From Mizuhopecten yessoensis (Eukaryota), in assembly GCF_002113885.1 (NCBI RefSeq), contig NW_018408489.1, positions 215,800 to 279,799 of the forward strand: DNA of 64,000 nt, given 5' to 3'. The translations under genes were made by a program, and so were the position numbers. The notes beneath the pieces were generated by a model, which saw only the letters and a list, made by a program, of their open reading frames with translations, was not told where the DNA came from and did not search any database. Of this stretch, positions 11,161 through 57,200 are shown in pieces (within the stretch, counting starts at the first letter, position 1; every line of letters starts with the position of its first letter).

Positions 11161-13744
11161 CCTGTGCTCAAATACAGTTTCATGTTAAGTGTAAAAAGTG
11201 ATAATCCATAAAAAGTCACATTTTATCAATAATTTGGAAGAATTGTGGTTTGGAAGAAATGTGGAGAGATGTACATGTACAGCCATATTCCGTTTTCAAT
11301 ATTTCCATTGGACTATTTTATTTTGACCCACATTAACTGTACATGTGTGTCACAAGTTGCTAATTAAATTGTGAATCGCCGGAAAGCCACGGTATAATCT
11401 TTGCACAAAGGATGTACGTCTCGAGTAGATCGTATACTGTATTATCTCGAAATACATCTTTCGAGTTGATTTAAAATACTAACAGAGATAAATAAAGAAT
11501 ACAAAAAAAAAATCTTCGATAAAGACATATTAATTATCATTTAACTTAATACATTTGTTTGTGCATGTTGTCCAAAAAATTTCAAAAAAAAGACAGGTCC
11601 ATTTTATCGATGATTCCCCAACCATGCAATGACACGGCCTTTCTCTAAAGTCATCATTCAGTTTGTAATTTCGTCAGGATTATCAAACGTCAGCGTATTA
11701 ACTGTGTGACAGTCTATTACTCATAGGACTACGTAGCTCTCCCATGACTAACGTCTCCGCGTCTTCGGAAGTAGGCGGGTCCAATTCATCTGTGACGTCA
11801 CGATCCTATATATATGATCCACGTTTTTTTGGCGCCGTTTAAACAATCGATATATATACTGCTGACAACACCCCGATTGAGATATAGAGCCGGGTTGAGA
11901 AATCGTGTTGCCCATATAGATTGCACAATTTCTGACCCGGATGAGAAATCGTGTAGGGGTGAGAAATCGTGTCGCGAACGCAGCAATTTTGCACGATTTC
12001 TCACCCGGGTGAGAAATCGTGTCGGGGTGAGAAATCGTGCCGTAACACACGTCCTTGAAAGGATGAAGCAAAAGTCGACTAACCAAATATTAAATGGTTG
12101 ATACATTCGACTTTGTTGTCCTGCTTATCACAAATTTATATCGAAAACTATTGTTTATTTTTAGTAATACGAAATTTAGGAGCAGGTTGAAGGGTTTGTC
12201 TCTGTTTTAATTGTGGGGCATACTGATAACTCGGTCTTTTGGATTTCTTTTTTAATTAAAAAAATCGTTAGCATGCCATATATTTCATTAATTTTCCTTG
12301 TTTTTGAATATGTTGGTTACAGAAAATATATTAAGGTATCACAGCATCAGTTTAAGTCGCGCATAATTGTTCAACTCAGATTTTTTTTCTTTTTCTTACC
12401 TTTTTTCTTGAAGGACATTCCTCACTGTATAGAACATGAAGCAACATAAAGTGTTTTTTTGTGGCTTAGAGTAACTGCCGCTGTCAGATTTTTCATATAT
12501 GTTTTGCAGCCCACCAATTAGACACTCATATTGCTGCTATATGTTAAATCCCTGTACGGTAGCACTGGTTAGGCGTAGGCTTTGGAATGTAAAGGTTTCC
12601 AGTCTGACCCCATTTGGCTAATTATATATTTTTATTTCTAACTATATTTACAATTCTGTCAAATGTATGGCAAGCTATGATCTTCATTAAATAAATACAT
12701 AATTTGAAAAGGTCGTTAACGAATATTTTACAATAGTGACATTCTTTTGATTTATATATATGTATAATATATATAAGCAATGATAATCTTGAATTTTGAT
12801 GAATGAGTATTTATACTTATATATATGCTGGACATATGTATACATATAGGGTCAAAAATATAATTATAAAACAGAAATATATATATATAAATATAAAATG
12901 TCATGTTTTAGAGGTTTGGTTGTTTGTCTTCCAACAAGCTCCAACAAGCTTCACTAATGATATATGATTAAAAGGCTGTCACTACTTAGCTAGTCGCTCT
13001 AGTGTCCGAGGTCGATACAGCAGTCCCTCAAGTAGCAGTGTACAGTAGCGTACGGTGGCCATGGTTGATATTTTTGTACAATGAATAACCCCTGTAATAT
13101 TACATGTATCAAAAATTAAAAAAAAAATAAGCTCTAAAATTGGCATATGCATGATGAATTGGACTATGTGGGCTTCACATTTACAAAAAAATCGAATATG
13201 GCTTAAGATTACATTTTTGGCCATTTACGAATCTGTGTCTACACAACAAAAGCTAGCTTTTCATGTAGTCTATTTTTGTACCCAGTACATGTGTAAATAT
13301 TGTGAAAAATCCAGTTTGACGACATATGCTAAAACATGAGTATCTGTGACCGAGTAGGTGATATTTAATTTAAGACAGGTTTCAAGACAAAAATTACTAC
13401 TTGCGTGGGTCAAATTTTGGGTTAAAAACCATGTTTTTTGCATTTTTTTGGCGTTTTTTGAAGTGGTAACCATGGTTTTCAACAGTCCCAAATCTGGGGA
13501 AATCACTTTTTGAAAAAATATTCAAAAAAACCTTATTCAAAATGTAATTTATAAATATATATATATGTAGGTGTGTTGTGCAGGATGAACCCACTATCCA
13601 TGTTTATCCGAGACATGCCCTTTATTTTTAGGGTCAAGCCATTTCTACTGTACTCTGTCTGCTACCTCAACATCTTAAGCAGTCGACTGTCAATTTGTTC
13701 TCTGGTAATGATAATTTACTGGCAAAGATGTTCTGAAAAAATAT

Positions 13745-18376: not shown

Positions 18377-19985
18377 GGCAGGGGCGCTTCACTTTACCAT
18401 AATGGTGAAATGAAAGATTTTAGCATTTTTTCCCCCTATTTGACTTGTTTAAACCAATTATGGTTTAGATTACATCAGTTTGATGTCCTGAATATGAAAA
18501 TCACAAAAATTATGTCTGGGGTAGAGAAAATCAGGGTGGGGCAGGGGCCCTTCACTTTACCATAATTGTGAAATGATGGGTTTTAGCATTTTTTCTATTT
18601 AACTTTTTTAAACCAAATCCATTTAGGTTATATCAGTTTGATGTCCTGAATATGAAAATCACAAAAATTATACCTGGGGTAGAGAAATTTAGGGTGGGTC
18701 AGGGGCGCTTCACTTAACCATAATGGTGAAATGAAGGGTTTCAGCAATTTTTTTTCTATTCTACTTTTTTAAACCAAATCCATTTAGGTTACATCAGTTT
18801 GATGTCCTAAATATGAAAATCACAGAAATAAGGTCGGGGGTAGAGAAATTGAGGGTGGGTCAGGGGCGCTTCACTTTACCATAATGGTGAAATGAAGGAT
18901 CTGAGCTTTTTTTTTCTGTTTGACTTTTGTAAAAAAAATCTGGTTTAGATAACATCAGTTTGATGTCCTGAATATGAAAATCACAAAAATTATACCTGGG
19001 GTAGAAAAATTGAGGGTGGGGCAGGGGCGCTTCACTTTACCATAATGGTGAAATGAAGAATTTGAGCATTTTTCCCCCTATTTGACTTGTTTAAACCAAT
19101 TATGGTTTAGGTTACATCAGTTTGATGTCCTGAATATGAAAATCACAAAAATTATGTCTGGGGTAGAGAAAATCAGGGTGGGGCAGGGGTCCTTCACTTT
19201 ACCATAATGGTGAAATGATGGGTTTTAGCATTTTTTCTATTTAACTTTTTTAAACCAAATCCATTTAGGTTATATCAGTTTGATGTCCTGAATATGAAAA
19301 TCACAAAAATTATACCTGGGGTAGAGAAATTTAGGGTGGGTCAGGGGCGCTTCACTTAACCATAATGGTGAAATGAAGGGTTTAAGCATTTTTTTTTCTA
19401 TTCTACTTTTTTAAACCAAATCCATTTAGGTTACATCAGTTTGATGTCCTGAATATGAAAATCACAGAAATAAGGTCGGGGGTAGAGAAATTGAGGGTGG
19501 GTCAGGGGCGCTTCACTTTACCATAATGGTGAAATGAAGGATCTGAGCTTTTTTTTTCTGTTTGACTTTTGTAAAAAAATCTGGTTTAGATTACATCAGT
19601 TTGATGTCCTGAATATGAAAATCACAAAAATTATACCTGGGGTAGAGAAATTGAGGGTGGGGCAGGGGCGCTTCACTTTACCATAATGGTGAAATGAAGG
19701 ATTTGAGCATTTCCCCCCTATTTGACTTGTTTAAACCAATTATGGTTTAGATTACATCAGTTTGATGTCCTGAATATAAAAATCACAAAAATTATGTCTG
19801 GGGTAGAGAAAATCAGGTTGGGGCAGGGGCCCTTCACTTTACCATAATTGTGAAATGAAGGGTTTTAGCAAAAAAAATTCTATTTGTCTTTAATAAACCA
19901 AATCTGTTTTACTTTACTTCAGTTTGATGTCCTGAATATGAAAATCACAGAAATTAAGTCAGGGGGTAGAGAAAATCAGGGTGGG
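18377..19985 (+). repeat. Left subterminal array: 10 units of 158-163 bp
   Basis: Unit starts at 18381, 18544, 18702, 18863, 19024, 19186, 19344, 19505, 19665, 19826. Confidence 0.95.
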
Positions 19986-26667: not shown

Positions 26668-26964
26668 ATGTGTCTAAATCTGATAACAAAAAAATCATTC
26701 AGACCCCTTTTTATGGAGTTGTTGCCCTTTGTTGAAAAACTATTGTCCTGACAACTCTTCTAAAAACTCTGGTCTAATCGTCCATACAGCTTCTCCTAAG
26801 ATACTGGGTCGATTATAACAATAGTTGACATTGTGCATCTAGGAAGTAGTATTTCTACATTCCAACCTTTTTTTAACAGCGTTATAGCCCCTTGTAGAAA
26901 AATCCTTGTACAGGAATCTGTGTATTTGTATGTCAAAGGGATGAAAACTTTTTTTTTTGTATTA

Positions 26965-27415
26965 ATATTTATTGTCGAATGAATACCAAAGTATACGTGT
27001 TGTTTTGTGTGAATTTATATTTATTGTAGAATGAATACCAAGTATAAGTGTTGTTTTGTGTGAATTTATATTTGTTGTAGAATGAATACCAAAGTATAAG
27101 TGTTGTTTTGTATGAATTTATATTTATTGTAGAATGAACACCAAAGTATAAGTGTTGTTTTGTATGAATTTATATTTATTGTAGAATGAACACCAAAGTA
27201 TAAGTGTTGTTTTGTTTGAATTTATATTTATTCTAGACTAAATATCAAAGTATAAGTGTTGTTTTGTGTGAATTTATATTTGTTGTAGAATGAATACCAA
27301 AGTATAAGTGTTGTTTTGTGTGAATTTATATTTATTTTAGAATAAATATCAAAGTATAAGTGTTGTTTTGTGTGAATTTATATTTATTCTAGAATAAATA
27401 TCAAAGTATAAGTGT
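26965..27415. repeat. 51-bp minisatellite, about 9 copies
   Basis: gaatttatatttattgtagaatgaataccaaagtataagtgttgttttgtgt repeats. Confidence 0.9.
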
Positions 27416-27609
27416 GAAAGAGTTTGTTTTTGTTTTGTTATTTCTATCTTAGAATTTGTCAGACAATCATTACTTTTATGATGAGCGAATATCATAATAT
27501 AATATATTCAATAAATAATTCATCAGACTGTTTTGGTTTTAACTTTGTGTTTATTTTATGTCAATATTTACCAAACATTCCTGACCTTGAATTCTACATC
27601 AGATTGACA

Positions 27610-28500
27610 TTTTACCATTATGGTAAAGTTAAGGGCCCCTGCCCCACCCTGATTTTCTCTACCCTAGAGATATTTATTTTTTTATTTTCATATTCAGGAC
27701 ATCACACTAATGTAAAGTAAAACAGATTTGGTTTAAAAAAGTCAAATAAATCAAAATTGTTAAAATCCTTAATTTCACCAATATGGTAAAGTGCAGGGCC
27801 CCTGCCCCACCCTGATTTTCTCTACCCCAGACATAATTTTGTGATTTTCATATTCAAGACATAAAACTGATGTGAAGTAAAACAGTTTTGGTTTAAAAAG
27901 TCAAATAGAAAAAAATGCTAAAACCCTTCATTTCACCATTATGGTAAAGTGAAGCGCCCCTACTCCACTCTGATTTTTTCTACCCCAGACTTAATTTTTG
28001 TGATTTTCATATTCAGGACATCAAACTGATGTAATCTAAACCAGAATTGGTTTAAAAAAGTCAAATAGAAAACAATATATGCTAAAACCCTTCATTTCAC
28101 CATTATGGTAAAGTGAAGGTCCCTTGCCCCACCCTAAATATCTCTACCCAAGACCTAATTACTGTGATTTTCATATTCAGGACATCAAACTGTTGTAATC
28201 TAAACCAGATTTGGTTTAAAAAAATTAAATAAATCAAAATTGCTAAAATCTTTCATTTCACCATTATGGTAAAGTGAAGGGCCCCTGCCCCACCCTGATT
28301 TTCTCTACCCCAGACTTAATTTCTGTGATTTTTATATTCAGGACATCAAACTGATGTAAAGTAAAACAGATTTGGTTTAAAAAAGTCAAATAGAAAAAAA
28401 TGCTGAAACCCTTCATTTCACCATTATGGTAAAGTGAAGCGCCCCTGCCCCACCCTAATTTGTTTTACCCCTGACTTAATTTTTGTCATTTCAGATAGAA
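27610..28500 (-). repeat. Right subterminal array: about 6 copies of the ~160-bp unit, inverted relative to the left array
   Basis: Reverse complement of the 18377-19985 unit. Confidence 0.9.
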
Positions 28501-29566
28501 TACATCAAATTGAAGTAAATTTTAAGAAAAAGAATTGAAAAAAAGTTGTCAGAATAGCAATCGTTCATTTCACCATGGGGTGGTTCATATTACCATAATG
28601 GTAAATATGAACCGCGGTTCATTTCACCATGGCCTTCATATTACCATACTACACCGGTTTTCTTTTTAAATTATTGAATTATTAGCCCTTCAGGTTTGTG
28701 ATAGACCATAGGAGCCTGAAGTTCTGTCAATAATGAATAATAATAGTAATACACAAAAAATACCCCTAATATGCTTAAAAAATAGACAGGAGTGCAACGG
28801 CAGATTTACCCCTCTTCGTTTTCAACGAAGTTTTCTCGCCCAAAACTGAAAAATTCCACAGAAACCAAAACTCCTATGCAGTCTAGGATGACTACTAATG
28901 TACACTACAGATCGTTTTGTGGAACAACATGCTTGCTGACCTGTTACATAGCCCGTTTTTTAGAATTCTCCTTTCAGCGCCCACTGACACGGAATCCATG
29001 CGGTGAATCCGTTTCCGGTCGTACGGAGTGAATATACAGGTAATTATTGTAATATGTTTTCTACTCGAAATTAAATATAAACCAACAATAGTAGGTACTT
29101 TTAACTTTTTTTAAAAATAACTGCACATTCAATTTAATTAACAAATGTACATTAGAGTTGTGTATCATTCTATTTAGAAACATTATTAATCAGGGGCAGA
29201 TAACTCTAATACCCGTTTAGTTCCGTTGCGGGAAATTCAAATTTCAAAGTATCGGGAAGATTTTAAAACATTTCAGAAGCCGTCAACATGAGTGACAAGC
29301 ATCTTGATGTTGCCTTGTGGTATGTTTTTAACTGAAAAGTAGAATTANAAGATCAGACACATGAATAATAAATGCGAGTTAGTTTAATTTGTATGTGAGA
29401 AAATAACAGGCACATGTTTTTTGGAGGGAAATCTGTCAATGCTTTTTGCAGGGAAACTGTCAATGCTTATCAGGCCCATTACACTGCCGATTGAGCTATA
29501 TAGTTGTAAAGACCTATACCATTTGTTTGTTTGTTTGCTTGAGTGGTTTTACGTCCGCTTTACTAC

Positions 29567-29693
29567 CATAGGAGCCTGAAGTTCTGTCAAAAATTAATAA
29601 TAACAGTAATACAAAAATACTATAATATGCTAGGTATTTTTTTCTATTTCTGTTTAATATTATTAATTTTTGAAAGAACTTCAGGCTCCTGTG
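29567..29693. mobile_element. 127-bp MITE sharing the P-like element's termini
   Basis: CATAGGAGCCTGAAGTTCT / AGAACTTCAGGCTCCTGTG; 8-bp TSD TTTACTAC at 29559-29566 and 29694-29701. Confidence 0.9.
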
Positions 29694-30013
29694 TTTACTA
29701 CCTAGTAATTTGGTAAATATAATCAAGCAGACGCCAATACCAGCTCCATCAACCCATCTGAAATAGGGTTTTAGAGCTATTTTGACATGATTTTCGTTCT
29801 AAAAGACAAAAAAAAATCGTTTGCATTTAAAATATCATTTTAACACTACCTGAACTGAAAAAAGCATAAAAATATATGTAATTTTACATTTGTGAAAATA
29901 AATTATACTTTTTACTGTATGCTTTTCGAAGTGAAGTATGAAATCTTTGGAAATATACAGGTAGGTCTTTACAGCTATATACATTGTAGCGCAATACGCA
30001 TAGTGTACTGTAC

Positions 30014-30914
30014 CTGGTTNAGTTGGGCTAGTAATAAGACTTTGAGATGTTCTGGTGTTGTTTCTGATGAAGATATGTTTTCAATAATTTTCACCATGTC
30101 ATTATGATCAGGTTCAGAGAGGTTGATACATGTCATATTGGATTCATCCAAGTCATTCTGTTCATGTCCATTTTTGTTTAAATTATTAGGATCACTTGGA
30201 GTGACTTTTGCCTTTTTATCGGTTTTGGAATCATTCATGTTGTTTTCCATCTTTTTCCGCTTTCTTGATCTACTAATAACTTCATAATTTATGCATCTTT
30301 CACAGTGTTCATTTTTTGCACACAATGGTAAAATCACTCTGCATGACTTTGACCTGTAGATGGTTTTCATGGAGTTTTCATCATGAACATAGCTCCAAGT
30401 TTCCTTTATGACATCACAGGGGCGTTGTTCACTGATGTATGATCCTTGGCACATAGACACAGTTTGGGCAAGTAAAACAAAACCATTAATAGTTTCCTGG
30501 TCAAAATTCAAACGATAGCCCATGCTGAAAACTTTATTACGTATAGTAATTTTTGCAGTTTCTCCTAAAGAAAGAATACAATACTGCAGGCTTCCATTTA
30601 TAATGGTGTTAAAGGGACACTTGACTTCCACAAAGTTATTGTTTGTTTGAGACATTTCACAAAAATCTGGTAAAACCACTTTTTCAACACTTCTTGGACG
30701 CTCCATTATAGATGTGAAAATAATGTGTCGTTTTCCTTTCTCGTACAAAAATGTTGACTTCACATCAAAGATGACTTGAACTAGTCTTGATAGCAGTACT
30801 TGAGTTGGTGGACAGACGTTGTTATCTCTGTAGAATTGCGTACACACATCATACATCCGATTCAGCCGCACAAACTTTTTGCTGTCATCTGTTCGTTGGA
30901 AGTGAATTGCCAAC
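30014..30914 (-). CDS. Exon: RFX-like winged helix plus Cys-rich region, probable N-terminal part of the P-like transposase
   Basis: AG acceptor at 30916-30915; (W)LAIHF..V..MY..NN..P..LV..IF..V..L..G..I pattern; RSKSC..CERC; NLS RSRKRKK; interrupted by an N at 30020; no catalytic domain visible. Confidence 0.55.
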
Positions 30915-31166
30915 CTGTAGAGAAAATAATTTATAATATGTATAATAAATTCAAACAGCATACTTTCGAGTTTCGATGAAGGCCGGAATAATAATTGGTA
31001 AAAAAGTATTCTGTTAATGGCACATTTTGTTTGTTTTATATCACATTTTCTTCTGATAAATGACATATGATATTAAGAGGAATGTATTGTTATATGATAG
31101 AGATCGAATTCAGGAGAAATTCACAAAATTTGGATATCTAATGTTTTGTTTATATTTGTGTTATAG

Positions 31167-34100
31167 GAAGATTTTACAAGAGATTATCCAAAAAGAAGAC
31201 AGCAAAAATGTTGCTGTAACTGCAACAACGGGAATGGCCAGTCTCCATCTAGGATCCAATGCAACAACCTTACACCACTGGGCCGGGATTTTAGATGGGA
31301 GACACTCCATTGAAAAACTTCAAGAGTTATTTGACAATGACGACAGCTACTCAGAAGCCAAAAAACGGATACAGATCACCAAATGCTTAATCATTGATGA
31401 AATAAGCATGTTGTCAGCCAAAATTTTCAACATGGTGGAGTCTGTATGTCGGCTTGTTAAGAAAAATAATCAAGCCTTCGGGGGTATTCAGGTAATTATT
31501 TCTCTAGCAAAAATGAGCCATGACTGGTAATTTGTTTGTCAAAATCATGTCTACAAATATTACCAATATGCATTTTTGTCCCGCCATCATCAAATCTCCC
31601 TCTATGTGTGGTCTGTCTGTCCATTCATACTTAAACAACTATTGTGATGAATTGTTACAATAATACATTATTTTAATACTGTTGACATAACTCCATCCAA
31701 CAGATAAGCGATAATATCAAATTTACATAGTACTAATGATTAATTTACAATGGTGGGCTCAAAGGTCCTTCCTGTATGTTTTATTATCAAATTTGTAAAT
31801 AACCCCTTAATGAAAGCAACTTTTTAATATTTTGTTTCAATATTGTAATTTTTCATTTATAATATTTTTCAGGTTTTAGTGTCTGGGGATTTTAAGCAAC
31901 TTCCTCCTGTTCCAAACTACAGATTAGGGGATGAAGGGAAATACTGTTTCGAAAGTGAGATTTTCCAGCAAACATTTCATCATCATATTAACTTACCCAA
32001 GGTATGTGTAATTTTGTTATACATTTTTACTTCACCAAAGCCCAAGTGAGCTTTTGCAATCTATTGCCATCCATCATCTGTCTGAAACTTTATTTTAACC
32101 ATTTCTCCTCAAAAACTATGAAGCCAACTTCAACCAAATTTTGTAGGAAGTATCAATCTATAAAAATCTTTTCACACATCAGCTATCTGAGGATTCTTGA
32201 ATTTGTTATATAGCATATACATGTACTACAAAACTGAAAACTTGCAAAGAAAACCCCCCAAAAAGGTCTTATTGGAAACAAATGACCTTGAACCATATTT
32301 TAAGGTCATGGGGTCATATCTTGTGAAATACTCAAACAAAAATGCCTAGTCATTATATTTCGCATTTTGGCAATATTATATATGGCAAATAGCTTGGTTT
32401 GATATAGTGCTATATTTCTTCTTCTTTTTTAAGAAATAAGCCTTGAACCATATTCAATGCCACAGTATTCCATTTTATTGATACACCCAACAACCTCTTC
32501 TGAGAGCAGCTAAGGACATTAATTGATTAGTTTATGAGTGGAAGGTAGCCAGGTTGCATGGCAGGCCGCTTCTCTTAAATTAATACATGGAAAATGATCC
32601 CTGTAATGCATGTTATAGTGACGAAGCATGCAAGTATGTACATGTATTTACAAGGTAAATGTTAAAGCTAATGGCTTCTTAGCTTGCATAGATGATTTTG
32701 TAATTCCTTTGTTCATTTGTTCACAGGTAATGAGACAACATGAGGAAGACTTAATCAAAGCTGTAAATGAGTTATGTAACGGTTCTCCATCAGCTGAAAC
32801 ACTGCAGCTGATGAAAAGTCTTGACAGACCCCTGGACCCTGGTGATGATCATACAGAAATTGTGAGCTTTTTGGAACAAACTTTGATGCCAGCTTTGTGA
32901 ACCAAGAAATGTTGGAGGATATGGAAGGAGAAATGCATGTGTTCAAAGCCAAAGATGAAGGTTTGTACTTAATTACCAGTACCTTCCTGGGGTGAAGTTT
33001 CTCAAATTATTGATCTTCAAATATCAAATAATAGTTTGAAGTGGATAACCATGTGAAAAGTTTTGAACATTTTGTAAAACATCTATAAAGGTCTAAAGTA
33101 TTTAAATGTGTTTTTTAGCAACAATAGTAAGCTGGAATATAGTGATTATTGAAAAAAATAAAGACAAAGGGCTAATTTGAACATCCTTAGCCTATTTGTT
33201 TTTACCTCCAGTTATATGTGTTCAGGTGACAGATACAGGTCCCCTGGGTCTCTTGTTTAAGTTTTGTTGATTTCATTTTTTCCTGATCATTTTATATTCA
33301 TGTATATATATGTATTCTTTCAGGTTATCTGAAGCTTTTACGAGGAAATGCGGTTCCTAAAACACTGACTGTAAAGATATGTGCTCCAGTCATTCTTTTG
33401 AAAAATATTGGAAACGGTCTATTCAATGGAATGAGAGGAAAAGTCCACAGTATATCGAAGGAAAATCTACCTATTATTGATTTCCATGGACGAATGATCA
33501 CAGTGAGTCCTGTAAGATTTGATGTTTTTGATGCACAACAGCAAAAATCGTTGGCGTCGCGAAGACAAATTCCACTCATGCTGGCATTTGCGTTGACAGT
33601 TCATAGAGCCCAAGGTCAGACAATAGAAAAACTTGAAATTGACTGTTATTCTTTTTTTGCACCGGGACAGATGGGTGTTGCTGTTGGCAGAGCTAGAAAC
33701 AAAACTGGGTTGTGTATCAGGAACTTTAACAAAAAAGCAGCCAACCTCAAACATCCTCAGTGTGTTTATGACTTTTACGATAATGTAGAACAATTCCAAA
33801 ACCGCGTAGATGACTGTTGTTGGGCTGATATTGTGTGTGAGGATCTATTACCTCTGGACACTGAACCCAGCTCGTCACAGACCTATGAGACTGATCCAGA
33901 GGAACCAGGTCCATCTGAGTTACCTGCAGAAGCAACACCAAAATCAACAGTTGAATCCCCATTTAGCCTGGAAGAGTTTTTCCTTCACAACAAAGATGCT
34001 AAATTCACGTACAATATTCAATCAGATGTAATCAAGAAATTAAAAGGTCACATGAACTGGATTTATGAAATAATTACTGACATCTTAAAAGAAAGTCCAA

Positions 34101-35212
34101 AAACAAGACAGAAGTGGACCACAGCTTTCGATCAACTGAACAATTTCTTAGTGAGTGACAACCACATCACCAGCATCAAAACACTCTTTTCTGTGGACAC
34201 AATTACAAAAGAAAACAACAAGCTCTCTTCCAAACTGGCTTTCTGGCTCATGGACAAACTAATTGAAAATGAGGCCAAAAAAGTGCAACAAACACAGGAA
34301 GAGGAACTGCATCAGGAGACCCCACCTCCTCAACTTTCACAAGCTGCCAAAGGAAAAATTAGATATATTGCTGGTGCATGTGTTAACAAAATTGGGACAA
34401 GGCTGCAAAAGTCGGTTGTATCAAAACTAAGTCAATGCACAGCCAAGAGCAAAATAAGTAGGAAATTGGACTACAGGAAACAACGAATGCTGAAAACCTT
34501 CAGAATAAATGAGAGTGAAGTTGACGATTCAGAACCCAGCATGGCAGAGATAGATTTCAAACAAGGGTTGTCACATGGATTATATGTTGTCAGTGATGAT
34601 GTGTTTAATTTCTTCATTAAACTCCATGATGTGGTGCAAAGCACAATAACCGTGGCTCAATTTCATCTGCATTTTGACAACATTCACCTGAATTGTAGGT
34701 CTGCAGTTGATGCCAGTGACCTTCTTCTCGACAAATGGATAGATTTGTTTGGGGAAATCGATGACACACAAATGGAAGATGAAATATTCTTGAATTTAGT
34801 TATGGAGCTGTACAAAGACATTACAGAATATTTCTTGAAAGTGTCCATAGCAGAGGCCTTGAAAAACTTTAAAGCAACTGTGCCAAGGAAGAAAAAACAA
34901 GCGTTTAGGGTCAAACTCACTGCTCTTGGCGAGAAAAAAAATCCCAAAAAACAAAAACTTGAGGAAATAAATACAGAACAGGCATCATACATTTGTCATT
35001 TATGTAATGAAATTTGTGACTGGGATCCGGCAGAGATTGGGGATGAGAGCATTGCCTGTGACACGTGCAATTGCTGGTGTCACTATAAATGTGTTGACAT
35101 TGAAGGAACTGAAACTTTCTTGAAAAGAAAAAATGCTAAGTGGTATTGTCCAAACTGCTTTAAGGGGAAAGGCAAGGGAAAAGGCAGGGGGAAAAAAAGT
35201 AAAAAGAATTAA
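31167..35212 (+). CDS. Spliced Pif1-family helicase + P-transposase-CTD-like domain + PHD finger (exons 31167-31491, 31873-32001, 32727-32960, 33324-35212); one frameshift near 32865; Walker A exon not found
   Basis: Helicase motifs TATTGMAS, LIIDEISML, FGGIQV, GDFKQLPPV, VMRQ, AFALTVHRAQGQT, VAVGRAR; RYIAGAC and GLYVVSDDVFNFF; PHD CHLC..IACDTCNCWCHYKC..WYCPNC; canonical GT-AG introns. Confidence 0.9.
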
Positions 35213-35857
35213 GTGTAAGAAATACATGTCATTTATATTTCTTTGTTTTTTTTGTAAACTCATAGATTCTACTGTGTCCAGTTTAGGTCAAAGGTTGAAT
35301 GAAAATCACAGTTATGGGCTAAACAAGAATGGGGGTCCATGCATGATTGAATATAAATTTGTATTAAGATTTTGTATTGATGCGACATTGGTTGTAGTTG
35401 AGTATTGGCTCTACATATATGTCTTTTCTGGGTTTTTTTTGTTACAAATACACCAGTCATAAAAGGATCACAAATGATATTTTATGCTTGATGAGATTAT
35501 CAGGTTGTTCAACTGCCTAACATAACTATAAACTATGTCAGATTTGGTTGAATATGTATCTACCACATATAACCCCTTCCTGTCTTTATTTTAATATATT
35601 CTGTAAAATATAGTGTACTCTTTCTTTTTGATTTTTTTTTCACTGAGCAGTGGGCACTGTAACTCCATAGGAGTCAAATATAATGTTTATAATATTAACA
35701 AGAGTAACAAATAGAAATATCAGAAATGTAAAGTACTCCAGTCACAGAACTGATCTGCTAAATAAATTATTGACTGAAAAACGCTATGTTTTCTCGTTTT
35801 TTTTAAAAACTGTTTCCCATTTCATGGTCTAATTCTACTTTTCAGTTAAAAACATAC

Positions 35858-35889
35858 CACAAGGCAACATCAAGATGCTTGTCACTCAT
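35858..35889 (-). CDS. Putative first coding exon MSDKHLDVAL(W) inside the right TIR (mirror copy at 29288-29319 on +)
   Basis: caacATG context; GTATGT donor; phase 2 matches the 30914 acceptor and creates the W of the RFX-like WL motif. Confidence 0.55.
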
Positions 35890-36600
35890 GTTGACGGCTT
35901 CTGAAATGTTTTAAAATCTTCCCGATACTTTGAAATTTGAATTTCCCGCAACGGAACTAAACGGGTATTAGAGTTATCTGCCCCTGATTAATAATGTTTC
36001 TAAATAGAATGATACACAACTCTAATGTACATTTGTTAATTAAATTGAATGTGCAGTTATTTTTAAAAAAAGTTAAAAGTACCTACTATTGTTGGTTTAT
36101 ATTTAATTTCGAGTAGAAAACATATTACAATAATTACCTGTATATTCACTCCGTACGACCGGAAACGGATTCACCGCATGGATTCCGTGTCAGTGGGCGC
36201 TGAAAGGAGAATTCTAAAAAACGGGCTATGTAACAGGTCAGCAAGCATGTTGTTCCACAAAACGATCTGTAGTGTACATTAGTAGTCATCCTAGACTGCA
36301 TAGGAGTTTTGGTTTCTGTGGAATTTTTCAGTTATGGGCGAGAAAACTTCGTTGAAAACGAAGAGGGGTAAATCTGCCGTTGCACTCCTGTCTATTTTTT
36401 AAGCATATTAGGGGTATTTTTTTTGTATTACTATTATTATTCATTATTGACAGAACTTCAGGCTCCTATGGATAGACGTAAGAAGGAGAATTTATATTGC
36501 TTGGTGATTGTTTAAAAAGTGTAGTTTGGTATACGACTAAAAAGGGTTTAACAATTGTGGTTTTACAATTAGTCAGGTATATATAGACACTTTTGGTGAA

Positions 36601-38012
36601 CATGGAGACTAATAAATACTCCAGTGAGTCGGATATTACTAAATCTGTTTGGGAGGAAGAGTTTGTAGAGACTGTAGTACAAACACCTTCAGATAGATTT
36701 ACATCAACACCAAAGAGGGCTCCAGAAAATGATTTAGAGCCATTTATCCTCAGTCAAGATATCATATCGTTTCCTAAGCGTAAAGGTGTGGGTAGTAGGG
36801 AGGTAGTTACCTTAGAATCGCCACCCAGCTCAGAAACAGAGGAAGATGAAAATACAGAGGATGAAATAAAAAGGGTGGTAGTAAGAAGAAGGTTAAGACA
36901 GTCTGCTGTACATTTTACCCCTAAAACTATGAAAGTTAAGACAGGAAAAAGGGGAGGATGTTAAACCCGCGATTAAACAGAAAGTTTATAGTACTGAGAG
37001 GGAAAGGTCAGAACAGTATGAGGGGGATACTGAGGATAATGAACCACATTTGGTTAGACATAAAAATAGGAGACAGGTCAGACGTAAGGTGTCGGGGGCA
37101 GCACCTGCCTCACACACCATCCCACAAATTTCAAGTATCAATGATAGCCACAGGGAGTTAGATGGACAGATTACTGACACTCCTCAGAGCATAAACGTTC
37201 TATCTAATCAAAATTTGTCAGGATTGAGGGTGCATAGAAGAGAAAAACATCCAGATACATTTAACGGTACTAGCAGTGACTGGCAAGACTATCTTGTTCA
37301 CTTTAAACAGGTAGCTGCCTGGAATGCTTGGACGGACACAGAAAAATCCCAACAATTAAGTATGAGTTTAAGGGACACAGCCCAAAAGCTGTTAAGCAAT
37401 CTAACGGTAGGGCAGTTATCTGATTATAACTCAATTAGACAATGTCTCACTTAGAGATTCAATTCTAAGGAAATGAGTGTGGCACATAGGTGTACAATGA
37501 GGGAACAAAAGCAGAGTAAAGGCGAGTCAGCTCCAGACTTTGGGTATTCTCTACGAAGAACATCATTACTAGCTTACCCAGGTTTACCCTGTCATTACCT
37601 AGAGTGTCAAGTAACAGATCAGTTCATAAACGGTCTAAATAACTTTGAGATGAAAAAGAAGGTAGCATTTAGCCATCCTTAAACACCAGAAGAGGCTATT
37701 TCCTCCGCTGTAGAGTACGAGGCTGTAGCAGGGAGTAGTCCACAGAAACACGTGGAAACCTCTGAAAAAGTCTGTTCCATAACCCAATCTGATAGCTAAG
37801 GGAGTCAGATATTAACAATAGAGCAAATAAGTAAGCTACTGGACAACAAGTTAGCGGAACCTAGAAAAGGAAGGAAAGATAGTAAAAACAGGACTTCAGA
37901 CAAAAAGGGGGCTTGTTTGTTTTTTAAAGAAGAGGATCATTATATGAGGGAATGTACCAGACTTAATAATTTAAGGGACTTAGAAGAAAAACTAAGTAGG
38001 TCAGAAAACTAA
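36601..38012 (+). pseudogene. Gypsy gag, disrupted
   Basis: PDTFNGTSSDWQDYLVHFKQVAAWNAW..LSMSLRDTAQ; QSKGES..DFGYSLRR..LAYP; DQFINGL; decayed zinc knuckle near 37910-37955; frameshift and stops. Confidence 0.8.
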
Positions 38013-42892: not shown

Positions 42893-45262
42893 AGGGGCAT
42901 CACGGTGAAGTAACTTTATTTTTTGTCCTTTCTTCAAATATTACATAAACATATGAAGTGAGACTCCTTATGGAGCATAACGATCGGATTTGGCTGAAAT
43001 AGATTCATAAAAATGATTAAATCTAAGATAATCATCGGTATTTCTACCTGTCTGACCAACGTTTTGTTCAGGGATTTCCCTCTACTAGCGCATGCGCATA
43101 GCACACCATTTCTTTGTAAACAAAATGACTGGCCGTGTGAAGTAAGCGAAAGAAAAGTGTTGTACCGTGTCAGCTACGAAACGAAAAGTTGCCAAATGGT
43201 CAAAAGATAGCGCAAGGAGTACGTTAAGGTATCGTTATTGCAGGTGGGCAGTATTCAAAGGAGAAAATAACTGCCGTAGCGGTTAGCCGGTTAAGCTGAA
43301 ATGGAATCGACAGAAATGCTAGGGCTGTTTATGTTATGAATACATATCTAAACCTATTAAGCTCGCTAGTATCTTTGTCTGAGTTTGAACGCAGATGAAC
43401 TTAGTTTAATATGTTAATGGGCATGTATTGGAGAGAGTTTAATTTGCGTTTCTATAATTATACAGTGGTTTATGCGAAAGGAAGGGATAAGTGACTGGTT
43501 AGTTTGATTTTTGCCATGAGGCCCTCCAAGGGATAACTGTTGTGATGGCCAACGGCGTATTTTATGGGTCACCGAGATACGTGTTATCCAAGTCCGTGGA
43601 TTTACAAAATTTATAAAATTACCGGGTTCAATAAAATGGTATGATTCAATTATATTGCTGAATTAAACGATTATTTTTGTTTTTACATGCAAGATTTAAA
43701 TTAGTACTAATATGAATAACCGGCCTCCCTTGCCGGTTAAGCTGAAATGGAATCGACAGAAATGCTAGGGCTGTTTATGTTATGAATACATATCTAAACC
43801 TATTAAGCTCGCTAGTATCTTTGTCTGAGTTTGAACGCAGATGAACTTAGTTTAATATGTTAATGGGCATGTATTGTAGAGAGTTTAATTTGTGTTTCTA
43901 TAATTATACCGTGGTTTATGCGAAAGGAAGGGATAAGTGACTGGTTAGTTTGATTTTTGCCATGAGGCCCTCCAAGGGATAACTGTTGTGATGGCCCACG
44001 GCTTATTTTATGGGTCACCGAGATACGTGTTATCCAAGTCCGTGGATTTACAAAATTTATAATATTACCGGGTTCAATAAAATGGTATGATTTAATTATA
44101 TTGCTGAATTAAACGATTATTTTTGTTTTTACATGCAAGATTTAAATTAGTACTAATATGAATAACCGGCCTCCCTTGCCGGTTAAGCTGAAATGGAATC
44201 GACAGAAATGCTAGGGCTGTTTATGTTATGAATACATATCTAAACCTATTAAGCTCGCTAGTATCTTTGTCTGAGTTTGAACGCAGATGAACTTAGTTTA
44301 ATATGTTAATGGGCATGTATTGTAGAGAGTTTAATTTGTGTTTCTATAATTATACCGTGGTTTATGCGAAAGGAAGGGATAAGTGACTGGTTAGTTTGAT
44401 TTTTGCCATGAGGCCCTCCAAGGGATAACTGTTGTGATGGCCCACGGCGTATTTTATGGGTCACCGAGATACGTGTTATCCAAGTCCGTGGATTTACAAA
44501 ATTTATAATATTACCGGGTTCAATAAAATGGTATGATTGAATTATATTGCTGAATTAAACGATTATTTTTGTTTTTACATGCAAGATTTAAATTAGTACT
44601 AATATGAATAACCGGCCTCCCTTGCCGCGGCAATATATAAAAAAAATCAGAAAGGTTTGTCCCTTTGTGTAGGGAAGGTGTTTGGCCCCGTACCATCTGT
44701 ACCGGCCACATTCCGGTACTAAATTCAATATATATTTAAATATATCCACTTTATGTTTATGCCTATTATCATTGTTGACATTTAATTGTAAATGGATGAC
44801 GGGAGAAGGCTGTGATAAATTGTAAAAACGTGTGCCCCATCCCTTGTTTAACTTTATTGGCAACAAATTTATGTTTAAAAGCTATATACATTTAAATTAT
44901 GAACATTGGCGAGTGTGCAATTTACTTCTAATGATGAATAATTACTGTTCAATAAGTTTGAATACGGACTCAGAAATCATATAACTTGGTTTCATAGTGC
45001 GGTAAGAAGTTGCAGTTGCCTGACGGCCCCTCTCTTGGGGCCCCTTTGAAAACCGTTTCATCTCGCTCGCATCTCTTGTGTACTATACTTAGTAAGGTGA
45101 CGTTATCGGCGCTATTTTTAGCAGGGCTTTCCCGAACAATTCAAGTGGTCAAACTGGACATTTGGAACGGACTATGAATATGGGGATAGCGAGGTAACAT
45201 AAGTGGAAGTGCATACAATGCATACATTCATTAAAAAAAACGCCTTTTCACGTGATGTCCCT
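42893..45262. mobile_element. Kolobok-type non-autonomous element inserted in the 5' part of a LINE ORF2
   Basis: TTAA TSDs at 42889-42892 and 45263-45266; TIRs AGGGGCATCACG / CGTGATGTCCCT. Confidence 0.75.
43286..44627. repeat. Three near-identical 446-bp tandem copies
   Basis: Unit starts at 43286, 43732, 44178. Confidence 0.95.
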
Positions 45263-45266
45263 TTAA

Positions 45267-46630
45267 GAGTGTTGTATCTCTCTCTACCAAGCTATGTATC
45301 ACTTTGTTAATAATTAGATTTTTGCTCCTTCTCTCTGGTGATGTTGACAGTAACCCTGGGCCAAATGAGTCTGAATCAGATCTATCCTCGGTTTCATCAT
45401 GTTCTTCTTATTTTTCAACTTTATTTAATGACGCCAACTATTCTTTTGTGCACCTGAATGTCCAAAGTTTGAAACAAAAACTTGATATCCTTTTTAGTGG
45501 ACTACATAATATAACTATCCTGTCCTTTACCGAAACGTGGCTTAGTCCTGACGAGATAACTTCTGATTTTAACTTTCCTGGTTTTGCACCCCCTTATTGT
45601 TACTGCAGACCCAATAGGCAAGGAGGAGGAGTGGCAGTATATGTAAGCAATGAAATTTCCTCTAAACGTCGACCCGACCTAGAGTTACCCTCAGTCGAGT
45701 GTGTATGGTTGCAGCTAAATATTTCTGGAAGGTCCATTTTATATGGGACTATCTACAGGCCCCCCGATGCAACAGTTTCTTCCTGGGATCACATTGCCAA
45801 TTCTATAGATCTTGCATTCAGTACCGGAATCTCTAATATAACTGTAACTGGTGACTTCAATGCAAATTTACTAAGTGACACTAATCACTGTCTACACCTA
45901 CGTAATTTACTATATACTGTAAATCTTACACAAAGCGTTGTCAGTCCTACTTTCTTCACTGAATCGTTTTCCTCCCTTTTAGATATAATTTGCGCAAGTG
46001 ATCCTTCTTTAGTAAACATGTGTCATGCCGGTGAACATTTCCTCGATCAGCCTATTAGAATTCATTGTCCCGTGTATGGCACTCTTAACATTTCAAAACC
46101 CCTAAAATCCAGTTTTAAACGTAAGGTATGGCTATATGACCTCGGCAACTTCGACGAATATCGTGACAGACTTTCTAAAGTTGACTGGGACAGCACTTTC
46201 GACATTAATAACATAGACAAAAGTACAGAGCAATTTACACGTTATTTACTTACAATTGCAAATGAGTGCATACCTAATAAAGATATAATTGTAAGAGCGA
46301 ATGATGCTGCTTGGATGAATAGTGCAATTAGAAAATTGATTCGTAAACGTAAGTATATACACCGCAAAGCCAAACAGTCACAGAATACTGACGACCGGTC
46401 GAATTTTAGGAAAGCTCGTAACATGTGTATAAATGTCATTCGTAAATCCAAACGTGATTATTTTAACAAATTATGTACGAAGCTTAACCATACTTATACC
46501 AGTAGCAAAGAATGGTGGAAGATTGTTAATTGTCTTATGTCTAACTCAAGCAAAAAAAAACAAAACATATTCCTCCTATTTCCGATAACGGTAACTTTAT
46601 ACACGACGACTTAGACAAAGCCATTGCATT
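45267..46630 (+). pseudogene. CR1-group LINE ORF2, 5' part (2A-like motif + APE endonuclease); RT absent
   Basis: LLLLSGDVDSNPGP, HLNVQSL, FTETWL, YRPP, GDFNA, HCPV, WWKIV; probable leader at 42203-42892 on the other side of the Kolobok insert. Confidence 0.85.
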
Positions 46631-54277: not shown

Positions 54278-57200
54278 TAAAGAGACAATGTTTAACACAG
54301 GTAAAGAGACAATGTGTTCTGGAGGTAAAGAGACAATGTGTTCTGGGGGTAAAGAGACAATGTGTTCTGGAGGTAAAGAGACAATGTGTTCCGAAGGTTT
54401 AGAGACAATGTGTTACATAGGTAAAGAGACAATGTGTAATATAGGTGGGGGAAACAATGTGTTCTGGAGGCAAAGAGACAATGTGTTCTAAAGGTTAAGA
54501 GACAATGTGTGAAGTTTTAGAGACAATGTGTTACAAAGGTTAAGAGACAATGTGTGAAGTTTTAGAGACAATGTGTTACAAAGGTTAAGAGACAATATGT
54601 AACATAGGTAAAGAGTCAATGTGTTCTTGAGGTAAAGAGACAATGAGTTCTTGAGGGAAAGAGACAATATGTTCCGACGGTTAAGAGACAATGTGTAACA
54701 TAGGTAGAGAAACAATGTGTTCTGGAGGTAAAGAGACAATGTATAACATAGGTAAAGAGACAATGTGTTCTTGAGGTAAAGAGACAATATGTTCCGAAGG
54801 TTAAGAGACAATGTGTAACATAGGTAAAGAAACAATGTGTAATATAGGTTAAAAAAACAATGTGTTCTGGAGGTAAAAAAACAACATGTTCTGGAGGTTA
54901 AGAGACAATGTGTTCCGAAGGTTAAGAGACAATGTGTAACATAGGTAAATAGACAATGTGTAACATAGGTAAAGAGACACTGTGTTCTGGAGGTAAAGAG
55001 ACAATGTGTTCTGTAGGTAAAGAGACAATGTGTTCTGGAGGTAAAGAAACAATGTGTTATGGAGGTAAAGAGACAATGTATTACATAGATAAAGAGACAA
55101 TTTGTTACATAGGTAAAGAAACAATGGTTTCTGGGGGTAAAGAAACAATGTGTTCTGGAGGTAAAGAAACAATGTGTTATGGAGGTAAAGAGACAATGTG
55201 TAACATAGGTAAAGAGACAATGGGTTCTGGAGGTAAAGAGACAATGTGTTCCGAAGGTTTAGAGACAATGTGTTACATAGGTAAAGAGACAATGTGTAAT
55301 ATAGGTTAAAAAAACAATGTGTTCTGGAGGTAAAAAACAATATGTTCTGGAGGTTAAGAGACAATGTGTTCCAAAGGTTAAGAGACAATGTGAAACATAG
55401 GTAAAGAGACAATGTGTAACATACGTAAAGAGCCAATGTGTTCTGGAGGTAAAGAGACAATGTGTTCTGGGGGTAAAGAGACAATGTGTTCTGGAGGTAA
55501 CGAGACAATGTGTAACATAGCTAAAGAGACAATGTGTTCTGGAGGAAAAGAGACAATGTGTTCTGGTGGTAAAGAGACAATGTGTTCCAAAGGATAAGAG
55601 ACGATGTGTAACATAAGTAAAGAGCCAATGTGTAACATACGTAAAGAGACAATGTGTTCTGGAGGTAAAGAGACAATGCGTTCTGGAGGTAAAGAGACAA
55701 TGTGTTCCAAAGGATAAGAGACGATGTGTAACATAGGTAAAGAGACAATGTGTAACATAGCTAAAGAGACAATGTGTTCTGGAGGTAAAGAAACAATGTG
55801 TTCTGGAGGTAAAGAAACAATGTGTTCTGGAGGTAAAGAAACAATGTGTTCTGGAGGTTCTGGAGGTAAAGAGACAATGTGTAACATAGGAAAAGAGACA
55901 ATGTGTTCTGGAGGTAAAGAGACAATGTGTAACATAGGTAGAGAAACAATGTGTTCGGGAGGTAAAGAGACAATGTGTAACATAGGTAGAGAAACAATGT
56001 GTTCTGGAGGTAAAGAGACAATGTGTTCTGGAGGTAAAGAGACAATGTGTTCCAAAGGATAAGAGACGATGTGTAACATAGGTAAAGAGACAATGTGTAA
56101 CATACGTAAAGAGACAATGTGTTCTGGAGGTAAAGAGACAATGTGTAACATAGCTAAAGAGACAATGTGTTCTGGAGGTAAAGAGACAATGTGTTCTGAA
56201 GGTTAAGAGCCAAGGTGTTACTAAGGAAAGGGACAATGTGTAACATAGGTAAAAAAACAATGCGTTCTAGAGGCAAAGAGATAATGTGTTCCGAAAGTTA
56301 AGAGACAATGTGTTACATAAGTAAAAAGAGACAATGTGTTACATAGGTAAAGAGACAATGTGTAATATAGGTTAAAAAAACCAATGTGTTCTGGAGGTAA
56401 AAAAACAATGTGTTCTGGAGGTTAAGAGACAATGTGTTCCAAAGGTTAAGAGACAATGTGTTCCGAAGGTTAAGAGACAATGTGTAACATAGTTAAAGAG
56501 ACAATGTGTAATATAGGTTACAAAAACCAATGTGTTCTGGAGAAGAGACAATGTGTAACATAGTTAAAGAGACAATGTGTTCTGGAGGTAAAGAGACAAT
56601 GTGTAACATAGGTAAAGAGACAATGTGTTCTGGAGGTAAAGAGACAATTTGTTCTCGAGGTAAAGAGACAATGTGTTCTGGAGGTTAAGAGACAATGTGT
56701 TCCGAAGGTTAAGAGACAATGTGTAACATAGGTTAAGAGACAATGTGTTCTGGAGGTAAAGAGACAATGTGTTCTGGAGGTTAAGAGACAATGTGTTCCG
56801 AAGGTTAAGAGACAATGTCTTACTAAGGAAAGAAACAATTTGTAATATAGGTAAAAAAAACGATGTGTTCTAGAAGCAAAGAGCCAATGTGTTCCGAAGG
56901 TTAAGAGACAATGTGTTACATAGGTAAAAAGAGACAATGTGTTACATAGATAAAGAGACAATGTGTTCTGGAGGTAAAGAAACAATGTATTCTGGAGGTA
57001 AAGAGACAATGTGTTACATATGTAAAGAGACAATGTGTTCTGGAGGTAAAGAAACAATGTGTTCTGGAGGTAAAGAAACAATGTGTTATGGAGGTAAAGA
57101 GACAATGTATTACATAGATAAAGAGACAATTTGTTACATAGGTAAAGAAACAATGTTTTCTGGGGGTAAAGAAACAATGTGTTCTGGAGGTAAAGAAACA

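Follow-up and report, generated by a model that had tools for sequence, protein, structure and literature searches.

A scallop P-type transposon whose transposase and Pif1 helicase suggest a two-part enzyme with a built-in motor

In the scallop Mizuhopecten yessoensis, a copy of an apparently undescribed and widespread lineage of P transposons encodes a transposase and a Pif1 helicase, which suggest a two-part enzyme with a built-in motor. The copy lies in a stretch of 64,000 nt (assembly GCF_002113885.1, contig NW_018408489.1, positions 215,800-279,799 of the forward strand), called the window here. The two genes are linked, spliced and co-diverging, and the transposase lacks the DNA-gripping C-terminal domain (CTD) of P transposases; a CTD fold is predicted in the helicase protein and an RFX fold in the transposase. 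Our reading, held with slightly better than even confidence, is that this is a two-gene P-superfamily transposon with a split transposase, whose second subunit brings the helicase to the transposon ends.

The element spans 28707-36470, opens with CATAGG, closes with CCTATG and is flanked on both sides by GATAGAC, which confirms the CA..TG ends and the 7-bp TSD given by a sequence-only reading of this DNA. Among all CAYAGG..CCTRTG pairs in the window, a 7/8-bp duplication is found only for the element and its internal MITE; for a given pair, its chance is about 1 in 10,000. The inverted arms of the assembled copy measure 641 bp with 2 mismatches, and the left arm stops at an N (29348). The same reading had described nearly identical TIRs of 643 bp; the family TIR is only 337 bp, as measured in a sister copy, L013. 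The features are as follows, by window position.

28700-28706, no strand: left TSD, 7 bp, GATAGAC, a duplication of the right flank
28707-29043, plus: left TIR, 337 bp (length from the L013 TIR); presumed inward promoter of the helicase gene
29044-29347, plus: an additional 304 bp copied from right-end-specific sequence (mirror of 35830-36133), up to the assembly N at 29348; probably an assembly error; the Walker A exon occupies this place in L013
29567-29693, no strand: 127-bp MITE of the same family, 28/30 terminal matches, own 8-bp TSD TTTACTAC; present in L013 too
30014-30914, minus: remnant of the main transposase exon, with a predicted RFX-type winged helix (about 30913-30695), a Cys-containing domain and a linker; interrupted by the N at 30020; contig X1 shows splicing at 30914
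31167-31491, plus: helicase exon 2, motifs Ia-II (Pfam PF05970, 5.8e-13); loose ends in contigs X1 and X3; the Walker A exon joins 31167 in transcripts
31873-32001, plus: helicase exon 3, motif III
32727-32960, plus: helicase exon 4, carrying a frameshift near 32865
33324-35212, plus: helicase exon 5, with 2B domain, motifs V-VI, acidic linker, helical domain, CTD-like domain, PHD finger and basic tail
34328-34891, plus: P-transposase CTD-like fold within the helicase protein, by predicted-structure match only
34994-35158, plus: PHD finger (PF00628, 2.1e-06, over the cut-off)
35858-35900, minus: coding microexon of the transposase, ATG at 35889, ten codons and two bases, in a phase that suits the 30914 acceptor
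36134-36470, minus: right TIR, 337 bp, with a non-coding first exon and splice donor 36137, which contig X1 joins to transposase acceptor 30914
36471-36477, no strand: right TSD, GATAGAC, matching the left TSD

The window copy is described as assembled, with the Ns at 29348 and 30020 left unfilled. L013, an element of 9.5 kb, is a separate locus with its own flanks and TSD, 99% identical to the window copy, and served solely to tell which segments the latter lacks. It contains both missing parts, the Walker A exon and the catalytic half of the transposase; the completeness of the window copy had been misjudged earlier. Since the extra arm and the two missing parts all break at the Ns, the window copy is probably misassembled. 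A single first coding exon serving both genes from a 641-bp TIR is ruled out by L013, whose TIR measures 337 bp and which has the Walker A exon as a unit of its own, joined to 31167 in transcripts; in L013 the helicase ATG lies at offset 370. The scallop family looks young and expressed, because its copies are 99% identical and its contigs are spliced.

The minus-strand gene (30914-30014), which the sequence-only reading overlooked, encodes the N-terminal part of a P-type transposase. In the window copy, the two genes sit within each other's introns on opposite strands, and both are spliced in scallop transcript contigs. The microexon is found in L001, L012 and L013 and in the contiguous N-termini P0050, P0054, P0069 and P0125; no junction of it is among the transcript-contig matches listed. 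The P-type DDE core, with a D-x-x-H motif and a GTP-binding insertion, is present in relatives and L013 and missing from the assembled window. In described P transposons, transposition depends on GTP and involves a 17-nt staggered donor cut. The transposase profile matches only one PDB entry, that of Drosophila P transposase (6P5A, E 4.6e-05), and the catalytic D, D, E and the D-x-x-H motif align with it. PF21787 is found in 33/33 transposases, PF21788, PF21789 and PF12017 in some, and the catalytic motifs are intact in 10/10 transposase ORFs. A THAP domain was rejected, with no match among 56 transposase N-termini and an N-terminal model that matches RFX1 (1dp7, Z 10.1, rmsd 1.6 A); an RFX-type winged helix is predicted to replace it. 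Thirty-four transposases stop at a median of 77 residues past the catalytic-E motif, and the CTD profile matches no transposase.

The plus-strand gene had been read as a Pif1 gene of four exons. These four have AG/GT borders and matching phases, and all three introns between them are spliced in scallop transcript-like contigs; the gene, however, has five exons, the first of which (Walker A) is absent from the assembled copy. The 1-nt frameshift in exon 4 occurs in the window copy and L013 and not in the contigs of four runs. Searches of the spliced models were made exon by exon, and the element helicase is assigned to PF05970 (Pif1, superfamily 1). Full-length element helicases start at the helicase domain and retain Walker A, DE, motif III and the arginine finger. 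At the family level, motifs I, II and III and the arginine finger are present and motif VI is a variant (xGVAVGRA vs AYVALSRA in host PIF1); unwinding activity may therefore be altered.

The helicase belongs to the Pif1 family and human PIF1 is its nearest solved structure, as would be expected of a nested Helitron fragment or a single host PIF1 captured by an ordinary P element. This origin is extremely improbable and was rejected. The element helicases form a long-stemmed branch of their own, separate from the PIF1 of animals and fungi (SH-aLRT 99, in a tree with a midpoint root only and without mollusc host PIF1 or Helitron rows), Helraiser comes last among the PDB matches (7e-17 vs 4e-56), and the pairing of helicase and transposase recurs in many species with independent TSDs. 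Rep families are absent from the Pfam annotations of element helicases, and a domain search of the element bore out the earlier statement that no Rep/HUH domain is visible in it. P0203, a candidate host PIF1, was ruled out as such by its placement in the element clade and its missing host N-terminal Pfam domain.

From modelled structures, the helicase protein appears to carry the P-transposase CTD that is lacking from the transposase. Its helical domain matches the Drosophila P CTD (6p5a_B, residues 617-734) at rank 1 of 48,161, over 118/118 residues with an rmsd of 2.6 A and a Z of 11.0, short of the value of about 13 under which the tool advises caution for a helical domain. THAP9_C clusters head the Atlas search with this domain (TM 0.43 by query, 0.59 by target). 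Profile searches of PDB and Pfam gave no sequence-level CTD match, bar one chance-level match to PF12596, and both a Foldseek search with the CTD-like domain and an Atlas feature search were blank. The domain is present in 80 element helicases, and in every locus the CTD profile matches the helicase ORF alone.

Both genes occur together in five more bivalve genera, abalone and a sea cucumber. They are found at 11 genome loci (bivalves, a gastropod and an echinoderm) and co-diverge, so that Pif1 is more than a one-off capture. The transposase and helicase trees agree, and identities of the transposase core and the CTD are correlated (Mantel rho 0.78, p 0.0003, 10 loci). Protein identity between families is 35-68%, and the sole close pair shares the frameshift. 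In a transposase-only search, most loci also bear the helicase on the opposite strand; no helicase is near L059, L061 and L063, weak and distant matches whose transposase tails are similarly short. The elements are 7.7-16 kb long, with TIRs of 303-610 bp in relatives and 7-8-bp TSDs in five elements. The TSD is 7 bp in the window copy and L013, and 8 bp in L002, L005, L015, L016 and the MITE. CAYAGG ends are seen in 7/7 TIR-bearing elements, one with a terminal mismatch; TIRs were not found for L003, L004, L012 and L014. TIR-bearing copies encode the P-type transposase, which together with the co-occurrence supports the two-gene P-type system proposed earlier. A viral origin was rejected, as IMG/VR, searched with the transposase only, holds no relative of it. 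The sequence-only reading knew of no P lineage with Pif1, and literature searches, with Repbase and Dfam left out, found no published description of one.

Retention of the helicase throughout the lineage could also mean that it makes transposition replicative or single-stranded (peel-and-paste or Mu-like), the element being copied and not cut out. Helicase-bearing transposons are known, such as Helitron and AcademH, the latter with a TSD length unlike that of its nuclease-bearing sister lineage (PMC10045372). We give this little credence: in its ends, 7-8-bp TSDs and catalytic motifs the lineage is like any ordinary P element, transposition of short MITEs that share these ends leaves 8-bp TSDs, and a Rep/HUH domain is absent. 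It is similarly improbable that the second protein has a regulatory role or has long been carried along as a passenger, acting as a dominant repressor or a chromatin adaptor with a helicase domain that transposition can do without. The altered motif VI would suit such a role, as would the opposite-strand nesting, which would cause mutual transcription interference as in a regulator pair, but the ATP-binding and hydrolysis motifs are conserved over a deep clade and the helicase is strictly co-retained with the transposase.

The split transposase with a helicase subunit can be potentially described as follows. Gene 1 would give an RFX-winged-helix, HTH, RNase H and GTP-binding core that binds the TIRs, cuts the element out and integrates it with a stagger of 7-8 bp. 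Gene 2 would give a Pif1 helicase fused to a PHD finger and to the CTD that is absent from the core. The CTD may dock the gene 2 protein in the transpososome, and a 5'-to-3' motor would thus be positioned on the transposon ends; in Drosophila P, the CTD contacts target DNA and single-stranded transposon DNA (PMC7776569), the latter being the looped-out strand of the transposon end. The motor would most likely remodel or dismantle the strand-transfer complex and open junctions for repair synthesis; how the P strand-transfer complex is dismantled and repaired at the target is uninvestigated (PMC7776569). The PHD finger may serve to read target-site chromatin. The full version of this scheme is given a little less than an even chance: it posits two obligatory subunits, the second an ATP-driven Pif1 helicase with an inherited CTD that remodels or dismantles the transpososome, and an undescribed P lineage that extends over molluscs and echinoderms and whose genes are repeatedly nested in each other's introns.

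The helicase might instead act after excision at the donor site, where long-tract synthesis from the sister chromatid would restore the element of about 10 kb and raise copy number, the CTD-like domain merely tethering it to the ends. P elements leave a double-strand gap that is mended by homologous recombination (PMC7776569), the P{wa} gap-repair assay shows Drosophila PIF1 to promote long synthesis (10.1101/554550), and the elements are long. This alternative is rather unlikely, as the effect of fly PIF1 is slight unless POL32 is also missing (10.1101/554550), and it gives no reason for the loss, from the transposase, of a domain that touches both donor and target DNA within the strand-transfer complex. 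Of the two roles suggested by the sequence-only reading, the CTD fusion favours processing of intermediates over donor-site gap repair.

The lineage resembles the Drosophila P/THAP9 type (6P5A; PMC7776569) in its CA..TG ends, 7-8-bp TSDs, MITE derivatives, HTH, split RNase H with D/D/E, D-x-x-H motif and GTP-binding insertion. It differs in its two convergent, often nested genes and in its TIRs (about 300-610 bp vs 13-31 bp); unlike canonical THAP-type P, it has a predicted RFX-type winged helix in place of the THAP domain and a transposase that stops before the CTD, the CTD-like fold being part of the separate protein that bears the Pif1 helicase and a PHD finger. AcademH and KolobokH are likewise DDE transposons with TIRs, TSDs and a helicase as an accessory function; their helicase is RecQ-type (superfamily 2) and their transposases are of other superfamilies, whereas Pif1 here is superfamily 1, and the available parts of the reports mention no transposase-derived domain on the helicase (PMC10045372, PMC9587614). 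Helitron RepHel (PMC8788227) shares a Pif1-family helicase. Unlike Helitrons, the elements here have TIRs and TSDs and lack Rep/HUH, and cellular PIF1 structures match their helicase far more closely than Helraiser does. A PHD finger is present in vertebrate RAG2. RAG1L/RAG2L transposons share the convergent layout of a catalytic core and a partner subunit; with a Transib-type core, a kelch partner and no helicase in the available part of PMC7204232, they offer an analogy only.

The lineage bears on genome annotation: many multi-copy mollusc genes named PIF1 fall in the element clade, and not with host PIF1 or Helitrons. If the preferred reading is true, this would be the third DDE transposon lineage to adopt a helicase and, among the cases found, the first in which the helicase is a Pif1 and the accessory protein has taken over a domain of the transposase. 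A helicase would then be fused to the domain that holds the single-stranded transposon end, which would make the disassembly step testable with two purified proteins.

The element spans 28707-36470, with the termini CATAGG and CCTATG, and these termini and the flanking repeat bear out the CA..TG ends and 7-bp duplication proposed by the sequence-only reading. Among all end pairs in the window, a 7/8-bp duplication was found only for the element and for one MITE.

Features of the element
28707-36470, both flanks: 7-bp target site duplication (TSD), GATAGAC
29567-29693: MITE of 127 bp with the same ends as the element and an 8-bp TSD
30914-30014, minus strand: transposase exon, 297 codons, homologous to the N-terminal part of related proteins such as P0057 and P0059
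35900-35858, minus strand: coding microexon, its product matching the N-termini of contiguous relatives

Over 641 bp the inverted arms differ at only 2 positions, which both fall in the first 337 bp; on the left, the arm ends at a single N (29348). The sequence-only reading gave near-identical TIRs of 643 bp; those of L013, the sister copy found in the scallop genome assembly, are 337 bp long. L013 (9,510 bp) is ~99% identical to the window copy, and has different flanks and a 7-bp TSD. In it, a 98-nt phase-2 Walker A exon follows closely on the left TIR, and the transposase still has its catalytic half. The two copies diverge exactly at the two single Ns of the window: at 29348, 304 bp of right-end sequence stands in place of the Walker A exon, and at 30020 ~1.5 kb is absent. 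Since divergences at Ns fit contig joins across a repeat, the window copy is probably misassembled; a genuine template-switch deletion would also explain it and is a distinctly less likely account. L013 also has one single N, within a 511-bp duplication. About 115 bp of helicase intron 3 (window 32249-32363) is not present in L013. A same-family MITE lies inside the autonomous-type element of the window, and in L013 at 11640-11766 and 12151-12277; the MITE insertion has an 8-bp TSD, as against 7 bp for both long copies.

The helicase gene had been read as a four-exon Pif1 gene. Four plus-strand Pif1-family exons were found, with a PHD finger at the end, but no reading frame of the element encodes a Walker A motif, and a 1-nt frameshift interrupts exon 32727-32960 in this copy as well as in L013. 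An extra base at 32865 is present in contigs from four runs, and thus there are expressed copies in which the helicase frame is open there. The best protein match is 99% identical and annotated as Mizuhopecten yessoensis. Full-length element helicases keep motifs I-III and the arginine finger, with motif VI as xGVA(V/I)GRA versus AYVALSRA. Their matches to solved structures rank human PIF1 (4e-56) before yeast (4e-50), bacterial (1e-38 to 1e-29) and Helraiser (7e-17) proteins. In a quick, midpoint-rooted tree, built without Helitron or mollusc host PIF1 rows, the element branch is separate from animal and fungal PIF1 (SH-aLRT 99, stem 0.51), and the protein P0201 branches deeper.

The minus-strand exon 30914-30014 belongs to a transposase gene that was overlooked in the sequence-only reading. 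P0057- and P0059-type proteins contain PF21787, the P-type RNase H domain, and some members additionally have PF21788, PF21789 and PF12017. A profile of 33 transposases gave one match in the PDB, the Drosophila P transposase 6P5A (E 4.6e-05), with an alignment covering the HTH, both catalytic aspartates, the D-x-x-H motif, the GTP-binding insertion and the catalytic glutamate. The L013 transposase has an additional frameshift in the linker. A GT donor at window 30013 (minus strand) lies a few bases past the transposase stop position of L013, i.e. a 3' UTR intron. An assignment of the N-terminal domain as THAP was rejected; its model (pLDDT 94.8) matches the RFX winged helix instead (RFX1 Z 10.1, RFX5 Z 9.4, rmsd 1.6 A), and weak Pfam RFX matches occur in four relatives.

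In 34 transposases the C-terminus lies a median 77 residues beyond the catalytic-glutamate motif, short of the position of the Drosophila C-terminal domain (CTD). Among 48,161 chains, the best match to the modelled post-helicase domain of the helicase protein (pLDDT 85.8) is that CTD (6p5a_B 617-734, all 118 residues, rmsd 2.6 A) at Z 11.0, a value within the chance range for helical bundles; the next-best match is 7.4. In an Atlas search, four of the five top rows were THAP9 C-terminal or P transposase clusters; sequence-profile searches and Foldseek gave no support. A profile of the CTD-like domain, present in 80 helicases, matched helicase ORFs only and zero transposases. The structural match is credible because of its context, and the modelled domain is very probably homologous to the P transposase CTD.

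Both genes lie on opposite strands in Saccostrea (L001, L012), Tegillarca (L002), Mytilus (L003, L006), Pinctada (L004, L005), Pecten (L016), Haliotis (L014) and the sea cucumber Holothuria (L015). TIRs are 303-610 bp in seven elements, L013 included, and TSDs are clean in five: 8 bp in L002, L005, L015 and L016, and 7 bp in L013. Independent copies in several genera, each with its own TSD, thus carry Pif1 together with a P-type transposase, as the earlier reading had proposed to check. Among metagenome loci retrieved by the transposase alone, 12 of the 14 with adjoining room (10 distinct, given two duplicates) have opposite-strand helicase or CTD sequence. No helicase was found in up to 20 kb around L059, L061 and L063. 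These are weak, distant matches to a P-like transposase, fragmentary and with short C-termini, and form a possible outgroup. In Mytilus L006 (9354-23255), a second copy lies after the element; it is partial and rearranged, and has pieces of both helicase and transposase.

The layout is tail-to-tail in L005, L006, L024, L025 and L065, and elsewhere the transposase lies within a helicase intron, which follows about residue 33 in the clade of the window element, residue 200-260 in L015, L026 and L032, and residue 425 in L016 and L021. In the window element's clade the nesting is mutual, as the first transposase exons are situated past the helicase stop. Since each gene begins in its own TIR, an identical TIR promoter probably drives both. 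Over ten loci, the identities of transposase core and CTD correlate (rho 0.78, p 0.0003); in both trees, a single host genus contributes copies to different groups. Because relatedness among loci inflates the test, the correlation shows long linkage, not co-adaptation.

Transcript-like contigs came from four studies, and they carry neither strand nor level and were classed as RNA by an automated guess only. All three helicase introns are spliced in them (GT..AG), and two contigs join the Walker A-coding stretch to 31167. In one contig, a donor within the right TIR (36137) is spliced onto 30914, the transposase acceptor, and the contig continues 1,540 letters past 30100. This junction omits the conserved coding microexon, and an in-frame stop then lies just upstream. 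Such skipping would cost the start of the RFX domain and may be a splice control of the transposase, by analogy with Drosophila P. A 2,459-letter contig from one run (X2 record 9; window 30100-30917) closes on itself as a 2,429-nt circle, running from just beyond the transposase stop to the 30914 acceptor. In L013 the main transposase exon measures 2,428 nt and contains a 1-nt frameshift; this single contig is consistent with a circular RNA formed by back-splicing of the entire exon.

Around the element, a 161-bp satellite, which we take to resemble Helentron-associated bivalve satellites, forms two arrays in opposite orientation (18377-19985 and 27608-28519), the second stopping ~190 bp left of the element. 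To the right, three short plus-strand ORFs (36593-37682) resemble a decayed retrotransposon gag, and a Pfam search of them gave no match. LINE-type ORFs, judged by eye, are at 1844-5266 (minus strand, 1,140 codons, endonuclease and reverse transcriptase-like) and 45304-46614 (plus strand, 436 codons, endonuclease-like). Tandem arrays are at 54278-58331 (24/25 bp), 43286-44627 (446 bp, three copies, 98%) and 26961-27415 (52 bp).

The CTD of the Drosophila P transposase touches both the target DNA and single-stranded DNA of the transposon (PMC7776569). A CTD supplied in trans would bring the helicase to the single strand at the transposon end. Action in donor-site gap repair is unlikely, as PIF1 in the fly has little effect except where POL32 is also missing (10.1101/554550). 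Replicative transposition, and a second protein that acts as a regulator or passenger, are each improbable. The reading favoured over these, held with modest confidence, is that the helicase remodels or dismantles the complex and passes the junctions to repair.

The lineage works like a P element, but differs from canonical members in having neither a THAP domain nor the CTD on a single chain. Helitrons are known carriers of Pif1. AcademH and KolobokH are known DDE transposons with a RecQ-type helicase, in contrast to Pif1 here. A full-text literature search found no P lineage with Pif1, although Repbase, rich in oyster and scallop families, may already record it. A bivalve-wide survey makes no mention of helicase or PIF1 and lists zero curated P families (PMC10294476). 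We regard the lineage as genuine, and as a variant of the P superfamily that appears to be undescribed.
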